Shown: positions 1,544 to 2,506 of the stretch, one piece after another | How the letters are laid out: each line of letters starts with the position of its first letter | How positions within the stretch are numbered: the first letter of the stretch is position 1 | From: Haliotis rubra | Lineage: Eukaryota | NCBI RefSeq assembly: GCF_003918875.1 | Contig: NW_025765148.1 | Coordinates: 372,001-436,000, forward strand | Direction: 5' to 3' | Length of the DNA stretch: 64,000 nt | Position numbers and translations under genes: made by a program | The notes under the pieces: generated by a model | Seen by the model: only the letters and a program-made list of their open reading frames with translations | Told to the model about the DNA's origin: nothing | Database searches by the model: none

Positions 1544-2506
1544 GGTTCGTTCAACGGTGGGAAGATCTATTATGGCACGGAGGCCATCCAAAAGAGGTCT
1601 CTTCTCAATCTCAGATTTCCTGTAAATCACGGGAGCATTACAGGATGGGAGGACATAGAGAAGGTGTGGCAACACGCCTACAGCAGGCTCGAAGCTTCTC
1701 CGGAGGACCATCCTATCCTTATTACAAAACCTCCTATCACCAGCAAAGACACCCAAGAACGGATGGCTCAGATCCTGTTTGAGACCTTCAAAGCTCCTGC
1801 AATGTATATTGCTGACACGGCGTCTCTCTCGCTGGCGGCATCCGGGCTGACATCGGGGATTGTTGTGGGATCTGGCGCTGAATTAACAACAATCACCCCA
1901 ATCCAGGGCAACACAGTAGTACATGAAGCCGTCAGGAGGTCTTTCTTAGCTGGAAATTGTGTCTTAGAATTCTTGTCTACGACGCTCAATACTGATCTGG
2001 AAGTCATCGAGGAAATGAAAAAAGCCGTTTGTTATGTTGCTGCTGACTTTGATGAGGAAATGATAACGGCAGCATCTTCTAAATCTTTGGAGATGACATA
2101 TGAGTTTGCCGACGGTAGCGACATCACTGTTAACAGCGAGAGGTTTAGAGGTCCGGAGGGTCTATTCCAACCGTCCGTAGTACATGTCAATGAGCCTGGG
2201 ATCCATCGAATGATCAACGCCTCAATTATGGGGTGTGATACCAACTCCCGCCAAGAGTTATACCAGAACATCCTGTTGGCAGGTGGAAACACCATGTTCC
2301 CTGGAATGGAAGCCAGAATCAGGAAGGAGGTATCTGCTCTTGCTGGGCCTGACGTGGAGGTCAAGGTGATTGCTCCGCCTGACAGAATTCTCTCTGCCTG
2401 GCATGGAGGATCCCAGATGGCGTCTCTACCAACTTTCAACGAGCTGTGTATTACCAAGAAGGACTATGACGAATCTGGCCCATCTGTCGTCAGTAGGTTT
2501 GGCTGA
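1544..2506 (+). CDS. Divergent actin-like (actin-related) protein, exon 2 (320 codons, intact); exon 1 not found in the window
   Basis: Polypyrimidine tract and TAG acceptor at 1541-1543, then an open frame GSFNGGKIYYGTEAIQKRSLLNLRFPVNHG...HPILITKPP...MAQILFETFKAPAMY...CYVAADFDEEM...ERFRGPEGLFQPS...GGNTMFPG...IAPPDR...KKDYDESGPSVVSRFG*, collinear with actin from about residue 42 to the end. AATAAA at 2716. Confidence 0.9.
   Translation, partial: GSFNGGKIYYGTEAIQKRSLLNLRFPVNHGSITGWEDIEKVWQHAYSRLEASPEDHPILITKPPITSKDTQERMAQILFETFKAPAMYIADTASLSLAASGLTSGIVVGSGAELTTITPIQGNTVVHEAVRRSFLAGNCVLEFLSTTLNTDLEVIEEMKKAVCYVAADFDEEMITAASSKSLEMTYEFADGSDITVNSERFRGPEGLFQPSVVHVNEPGIHRMINASIMGCDTNSRQELYQNILLAGGNTMFPGMEARIRKEVSALAGPDVEVKVIAPPDRILSAWHGGSQMASLPTFNELCITKKDYDESGPSVVSRFG

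Follow-up and report, generated by a model that had tools for sequence, protein, structure and literature searches.

Does an actin-like reading frame that has lost most of the residues with which actin handles ATP still encode a working protein, or is it a gene duplicate in decay? The question is raised by a locus of the abalone Haliotis rubra, of which we analyzed a stretch of 64,000 nucleotides (nt) (here, the window; RefSeq assembly GCF_003918875.1, contig NW_025765148.1, positions 372,001 to 436,000 of the forward strand). Positions 1544-2506 of the window hold, on the plus strand, an uninterrupted frame of 320 codons up to a TGA (2504-2506), as its translation confirmed. We consider it probable that this frame supplies the main coding exon for a non-canonical actin-related protein (Arp) of 359 amino acids (aa) that is functional and restricted to Haliotis, and in which the ATP site and the filament contacts are mostly lost and the actin fold is kept. 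An initial annotation, made from the letters of the window, had described a lineage-specific Arp with a dismantled ATPase site and shortened filament-contact loops, derived from actin by DNA duplication.

The frame is identical (100%) to residues 40-359 of two RefSeq proteins, XP_046556831 and XP_046556832 ("actin-like isoform X1/X2 [Haliotis rubra]", 359 aa each), which were found by a word-index protein search. It belongs to the actin superfamily, matching the Pfam Actin domain (PF00022) with an E value of 1.6e-85 and 287.6 bits (gathering cutoff, 27); exon 1 scored 30.1 bits against the same domain. The frame is the second and last exon of a gene copy that we call C2. A polypyrimidine tract and the acceptor AG stand before it (1525-1543, the AG at 1542-1543), and positions 1-1543 of the window, on the plus strand, are the 3' end of intron 1 (7.57 kb). 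The end of this intron (1232-1543) is homologous to the introns of two further copies, C1 and C3. Exon 1 of C2 was absent from window positions 1-1543 in tblastn and blastn searches; it lies off the window, 7.6 kb upstream of exon 2, at L001:25301-25417 (L001 is the H. rubra locus on contig QXJH01000123.1, and a window position equals the L001 position minus 31444). The exon boundary is a phase-0 junction that corresponds to codons 41/42 of actin, where the initial annotation had placed the intron. Full-length searches were made with the RefSeq model (P0016), and exons 1 and 2 were concatenated for codon counting only. A second abalone, Haliotis asinina, has one syntenic ortholog, flanked by an F-box gene and by SKA2, whose intron measures about 0.5 kb; its product, titled "actin CyI, cytoplasmic-like [Haliotis asinina]," is 81% identical to the H. 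rubra protein.

What has been lost was read from an alignment to a conventional invertebrate actin (P0023:1-375; residues are given in alpha-actin numbering). The C2 protein carries G15Q, K18R, Q137T, D154G, D157A, G158E, V159L, H161T, E214K, T303N, Y306F, and K336I; Q137T, D154G, D157A, G158E, and H161T had been noticed beforehand and are all present in the alignment. The catalytic and nucleotide site, intact in conventional actins, here reads H, D, or E at position 11, followed by Q15, R18, T137, G154, A157, E158, T161, K214, and I336. G15Q, K18R, Q137T, D154G, D157A, G158E, H161T, E214K, and K336I/F occur in both H. rubra and H. asinina, so that these replacements predate the split between the two species. 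Residue 11 is more variable. A change of D11 to H had been reported from a "VFHNGS" motif, and histidine is indeed encoded by exon 1 of the live gene in isoform X2; the change is not fixed, since isoform X1 has aspartate and H. asinina has glutamate. The exon in which the motif was seen (15141-15257, minus strand) belongs to C3, a dead copy, and the initial annotation had missed both its pseudogene status and the existence of C1.

Only 7 of 22 nucleotide-site residues are kept in the Haliotis protein, a retention near the bottom among 54 actin-like proteins. The 50 others that are equally far from actin typically keep 12 to 15 of the 22, and the losses at the ATP site therefore exceed what overall divergence brings with it. 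The surfaces that make filament contacts are also altered. The DNase I-binding loop (D-loop) is 3 residues shorter than that of actin and lacks M44 and V45, 9 residues of subdomain 4 are gone (at about 196-204), and the C terminus reads ...VVSRFG in place of ...IVHRKCF, all in agreement with the initial annotation. One residue is deleted near F90, the acidic N terminus is absent, and the target-binding cleft and W-loop carry Y143A, Y169T, I341H, and I345Q. The residues of the hydrophobic plug stay hydrophobic.

The actin fold itself appears to be complete. An AlphaFold2 model, built from an alignment of 54 sequences, reached a mean predicted local distance difference test score (pLDDT) of 95.8 and a predicted template modeling score (pTM) of 0.92. 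It matched G-actin with Z scores of 47 to 52 and a root mean square deviation of 1.0 to 1.5 Å over about 350 residues (44 to 47% identity), and it showed the four subdomains of actin. Because the model superposes on G-actin, the deletions are predicted to fit within an intact fold.

Sequence searches placed the protein nearest to conventional actin, at a distance from every Arp family compared. The 60 best matches in the PDB were all conventional actins of animals, fungi, and amoebae (316 to 323 bits); no Arp2 chain was among them, which gives an indirect comparison with that family. HMMER, run exhaustively against 1.84 billion cluster representatives, returned 18,730 actin-family proteins, among which the best single-domain matches outside the protein's own cluster were conventional actins (48 to 49% identity, about 340 to 345 bits); nothing closer than conventional actin was found among these representatives. 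Several two-domain proteins scored higher (P0017-P0020, P0039, and P0040) and were set aside as fusions of actins from fungi, Anaeramoeba/amoebae, and an insect. Conventional eukaryotic actins share more than about 80 to 85% identity with one another, a level that the Haliotis protein, at 46 to 49%, does not reach. By the same HMMER search, a centractin (Arp1) representative (P0105) was more distant than actin (38% and 255.7 bits versus about 344 bits for actin). In structural alignments, identity was 46% to actin, 31% to Arp3, 26 to 27% to Arp4, 29% to BAF53, 23 to 29% to Arp5, 22 to 29% to Arp6, 25% to Arp7, 21 to 22% to Arp8, 18% to Arp9, and 22% to Arp11, so that the protein is closer to actin than to any of the Arp3-Arp11 families; in the structural library, clustered at 40% identity, Arp1 and Arp2 were probably merged with actin. 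Nesting within a described Arp subfamily, which the initial annotation had named as an outcome that would speak against it, was not seen in these comparisons.

A maximum-likelihood tree of the 54 actin-like proteins gave the H. rubra/H. asinina pair full support, a stem of 1.02 changes per site, and no supported sister; by path length, the pair was nearest to conventional actins. The tree is close to a star, with support of <80 at 34 of its 51 forks, and it covers actin-like proteins rather than the full range of named Arp1-10 sequences. A weak pairing with P0082 (Shimodaira-Hasegawa-like approximate likelihood ratio test [SH-aLRT] support, 83) was rejected as orthology, since the active-site replacements of P0082 are different ones and it carries a large insertion. 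The protein was found among the proteins of H. rubra and H. asinina and in DNA and RNA of a congener. The word-index search returned few matches and no conventional actins, and for that reason it cannot show that relatives are absent. As far as the databases reach, and with their limited coverage of molluscs, the evidence supports an orphan actin derivative restricted to Haliotis, in line with the claim of lineage specificity. As a separate observation, several unrelated actin-like proteins from metagenomes and Logan assemblies (P0082, P0004, P0106, and P0103) keep 3 to 12 of the 22 nucleotide-site residues. P0103, likewise of 360 aa, has a short D-loop and has also lost part of subdomain 4, which indicates that such trimming arose independently elsewhere.

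The interval between the F-box gene and SKA2 in H. rubra contains three actin-like copies, of which C2 (exon 1 at L001:25301-25417 and exon 2 at window positions 1544-2506, plus strand) is the sole intact one. C1 lies upstream of the window on the same contig (L001:10001-11561); its exon 1 is intact and encodes D11, and its exon 2 has a TAA stop (DTQER to DT*ER), a frameshifting +1 insertion, and a 19-bp deletion. C3 is on the minus strand of the window. Its exon 1 (15141-15257) has 39 codons, with the histidine at actin position 11; its intron (14307-15140) has a weakened donor (GTAAGA to GTTAGA); and its exon 2 remnant (13748-14306) has an in-frame TGA in place of a tryptophan codon (14181-14183) and a frameshifting deletion of 400 bp at about 14119-14122, equivalent to window positions 1732-2131. 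All three copies share about 300 to 350 bp 5' of exon 1, the intron ends, and the 3' untranslated region (3'UTR), which indicates that the duplications within H. rubra occurred at the DNA level and not by retroposition. The RefSeq isoform X1 is predicted to splice exon 1 of the dead C1 (L001:10001-10117, with D11) to exon 2 of the live C2, 23 kb away.

The dead copies serve as built-in neutral controls within the same locus, and C2 is under purifying selection. By Nei-Gojobori counting, C2 and the H. asinina ortholog differ with a dN of 0.099, a dS of 0.237, and a dN/dS ratio (omega) of 0.42. Of the 127 differences, 77 are non-synonymous, a smaller share than the 0.77 expected under neutrality (binomial P = 5e-5). 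When copy-specific changes were assigned by parsimony with H. asinina as the outgroup, C2 had 14 non-synonymous and 16 synonymous changes (N:S), C1 had 27 and 8, and C3 had 21 and 6. The dead copies together (48N:14S) show the neutral ratio of about 3.4:1, from which C2 differs (Fisher's exact test, P = 0.0045). Constraint is unevenly distributed: omega is 0.12 in residues 271-359 (the second half of subdomain 3 and the C-terminal part of subdomain 1), 0.97 in residues 161-220 (subdomain 4, around the deletion), and 0.3 to 0.5 elsewhere. Between H. rubra and H. asinina, subdomains 1 and 3 are about 85% identical, subdomain 2 is 68% identical, and subdomain 4 is 74% identical.

Evidence of transcription came from eight public runs of two studies (P1 and P2) on one Haliotis congener, in which about 30% of the sampled words were present. 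Their divergence from H. rubra is about 3.9% (60 differences in 1561 nt), on the basis of which the source was taken to be a congener. Runs X1 and X3 (study P1) and X5 and X6 (study P2) were compared over window positions 1000-3400. In X5 and X6, one contig runs unbroken through 1444-2989, as genomic DNA with the intron included. X1 and X3 have zero depth over 1000-1485, a stretch that is covered in X5 and X6, and their contigs begin exactly at 1543/1544, with loose 5' parts of 137 to 145 nt that end in CCGTTCTGTTGTTGGGAGTGCAAGATACTC, the 3' end of exon 1. One contig of X3 (record 9; 1697 nt) covers 1543-3103 and is colinear through the stop, and it opens with 137 nt whose 3' part is the last 30 bases of exon 1. 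The coding sequence (CDS) of the congener contig has no indel, and among the 28 CDS substitutions listed none makes a stop (15 non-synonymous and 12 synonymous codon changes). The congener thus has a spliced mRNA in which exons 1 and 2 are followed by about 0.6 kb of 3'UTR. In the window, this 3'UTR corresponds to 2507-3103 on the plus strand, the span of the intron-less contig of X3, and from 2863 onward it lies within a high-copy repeat. Hexamers of the AATAAA/ATTAAA type, two forms that the scan did not separate, start at 2716, 2908, and 3124. The initial annotation had named missing transcripts and a dN/dS near 1 as the signs of a decaying pseudogene; spliced, intron-less contigs in two congener runs and an omega of 0.42 next to neutrally evolving dead copies point the other way.

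These results bear on whether C2 is nonetheless a young duplicate, still open and still transcribed, that is heading toward pseudogenization, its active-site losses being simple decay. Such a course would agree with the death of two of the three H. rubra copies, with an omega near 1 in residues 161-220, with the variation of catalytic residue 11 among D, H, and E, and with the approximately 7 kb of insertions in the C2 intron. Nevertheless, we think it quite unlikely. The open reading frames (ORFs) of H. rubra C2 and H. asinina are both intact at a dS of 0.24, identical active-site replacements are fixed in both species, and the overall omega, the contrast in N:S between C2 and the dead copies, and the omega of 0.12 in the C-terminal quarter all indicate selection; a spliced mRNA exists in the congener as well. 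Stops or frameshifts and a neutral N:S ratio characterize C1 and C3; none of these features, nor a lack of spliced transcripts, was found for C2.

If the gene is maintained, its product might be a divergent isoform that still binds ATP and forms filaments (i.e., a specialized structural actin), or it might be the Haliotis ortholog of a canonical Arp family (Arp1-Arp10/11). The first of these, which we regard as unlikely, is favored by the complete actin fold predicted with high confidence, the retention of G13, S14, G156, K213, G301/G302, and M305, and the still hydrophobic plug; it has to contend with G15Q and G158E, which put side chains in place of the glycines of both phosphate loops, with the loss of D154, D157, Q137, and H161 and of the ribose/adenine contacts E214 and K336, with a D-loop devoid of M44 and V45, a deleted 196-204 loop, and changes at Y143, Y169, I341, and I345, and with a site retention (7 of 22) far below that of actin-like proteins of equal divergence. 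The second is highly improbable. Although Arp1 and Arp2 are known to span a range of identity to actin that includes 46 to 49%, the 60 best PDB matches, through which Arp2 is covered indirectly, were conventional actins throughout, Arp1 scored 256 bits versus about 344 for actin, and Arp3-Arp11 reached 18 to 31% identity; moreover, canonical Arps occur across the eukaryotes, whereas our searches gave no ortholog beyond Haliotis.

We accordingly return to a functional, Haliotis-restricted Arp as the best explanation and outline how it may have arisen and may work. A conventional actin gene would have been duplicated at the DNA level, as the retained intron at codons 41/42 suggests, and the duplicate would have diverged to about 47% identity. 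In the line of H. rubra, the gene would then have been triplicated, with C1 and C3 decaying and C2 surviving with its intron enlarged from about 0.5 to 7.6 kb. By established biochemistry, actin relies on D154, D157, Q137, and H161 to bind the metal and the phosphates and to place the water for catalysis. In the Haliotis protein, side chains stand in for glycines of both phosphate loops (Q15 and E158), and E214 and K336, which contact the ribose and the adenine, have been lost. With the phosphate-loop glycines, D154, D157, Q137, H161, E214, and K336 all replaced, the protein very probably cannot hydrolyze ATP, and it may not bind ATP either. Judged from its sequence, canonical head-to-tail filament contacts are unlikely, since the D-loop is short and has lost M44, the loop at 196-204 is missing, and the D-loop-receiving cleft is altered.

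The protein would thus act as an ATP-independent, non-polymerizing scaffold with an actin fold. Its working surface would probably be formed by subdomains 1 and 3, on the barbed-end side, a face proposed because selection is strongest there and weakest on the subdomain 2/4 side; the partner could be a filament end or an actin-binding protein. A more specific scheme, which we offer as a doubtful speculation, would have a nucleotide-free fold dock through its subdomain 1/3 face on a filament end or an actin-binding partner, while the trimmed subdomain 2/4 face blocks the addition of subunits. The protein would then be a cap or decorator that resembles Arp11 and is peculiar to abalones, for example, in the actin-based acrosomal process of sperm; in H. 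rubra, alternative first exons, one of them taken from a dead copy that lies 23 kb upstream, would toggle residue 11 between D and H.

Several observations weigh against a functional Arp devoid of ATP turnover and filament contacts. An omega of 0.42 amounts to weak constraint for a member of the actin family. The RNA evidence comes from a congener and from contigs rather than reads, the RNA label of the runs was guessed (although the splice pattern supports it), and the tissue is not on record; the stop-free congener CDS is read from 28 listed differences, which are a part of the total. Protein searches found no ortholog in other annotated abalones such as H. rufescens, either through loss there or through database gaps. 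The surviving nucleotide-site residues (G13, S14, G156, K213, G301, G302, and M305) suggest that some nucleotide binding may remain. Because the alignment behind the AlphaFold2 model was made of actins, the model is silent on whether the pocket works. Finally, the conserved face may have a partner other than actin, given that the cleft residues Y143, Y169, I341, and I345 have themselves changed.

Comparison with known systems helps to place the protein. Conventional cytoplasmic actin (PDB 4efh, 1c0f, and 1d4x) is its best match by both sequence (about 320 to 345 bits, 46 to 49% identity) and fold, and the two share four subdomains and the intron at codons 41/42. They differ in about half of their residues, 15 of the 22 nucleotide-site residues are replaced in the Haliotis protein, and its omega of 0.42 contrasts with the near invariance of actin. 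Arp1, which retains its ATP site and assembles into a filament, resembles the Haliotis protein in length and in distance from actin, but the latter scores lower against Arp1 (38%, 256 bits) than against actin. In Arp10/Arp11 and Arp4-9, an actin fold serves as a non-polymerizing module or as an end cap, in some cases with no ATP turnover. Dynactin Arp10/Arp11 (PDB 5adx_J) and the nucleosome-remodeller Arps (Arp4-9) offer the Haliotis protein a functional analogy only: they are ancient and pan-eukaryotic, carry large insertions, and share 18 to 29% identity with it, and we found no evidence of homology beyond the superfamily.

The closest parallel, to which the initial annotation had also pointed, is with the non-canonical Arps, which are young, lineage-restricted, rapidly evolving derivatives of actin, mostly expressed in the testis (PMC8291977). 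They include Drosophila Arp53D, which has a 40-aa N-terminal tail, the testis Arps of the obscura group, and mammalian ACTL7A/B, ACTL9, and ACTRT1-3 (PMC8291977). Like them, the Haliotis gene encodes an actin fold, is restricted to one lineage, and is a young derivative that evolves faster than actin and is retained under selection. It differs in its independent origin in a mollusc and in having no N-terminal extension, and its loss of the nucleotide site appears to be more extreme. Mollusc actin genes diversify within lineages (PMC5440852); our literature searches returned no paper on the Haliotis actin-like gene.

Other features of the two loci are as follows. The sequence at the end of the 3'UTR (2863-3348) is a very high-copy repeat, with a word depth of 10^4 to 10^5 in two DNA runs versus about 57 and 15 in its flanks, and with many rearranged joints inside. 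The 7.6-kb intron of C2 contains two copies of a segment of about 370 bp (window positions 654-1022 and L001:25768-26268; 92 to 96% identity), and other dispersed repeats are located at 6872-7492, 11640-12007, and 16959-17296. A tandem repeat with a 77-bp period (4242-4700) yields overlapping look-alike ORFs (MLYG.GGGCCPVPPYSSHNHTVLYDPCCMGQ...). A 156-aa ORF at 4888-5355 (minus strand) encodes a Myb/SANT-like DNA-binding domain (PF13837; E value, 1.2e-14) and is probably a transposon-derived gene or relic; a neighboring ORF, also of 156 aa (3402-3869, plus strand), has no Pfam match. In H. asinina, the database model (L002:11540-13351) has 512 aa and carries an extra tail of about 150 aa of MFEPTEPG repeats, produced by a donor inside the last codons that is spliced into a 3'UTR tandem repeat, which has a 24-nt unit and is expanded. 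H. asinina retains the ordinary stop (TAA after ...VVSRFG), and the congener mRNA contig is without such a tail splice.

The kind of gene described here is known, and RefSeq already lists the sequence under the automatic name "actin-like," so that nothing established is overturned. To our knowledge, studies of fast-evolving actin derivatives that are restricted to one lineage have so far dealt almost exclusively with Drosophila and mammals. The Haliotis gene adds a case from a mollusc, in which the ATP site has been stripped unusually thoroughly while fold and frame have been held by selection in at least two abalone species. The concentration of constraint on one molecular face yields a direct hypothesis for the binding site, and the protein would provide a convenient natural test of what the actin fold can do without ATP.

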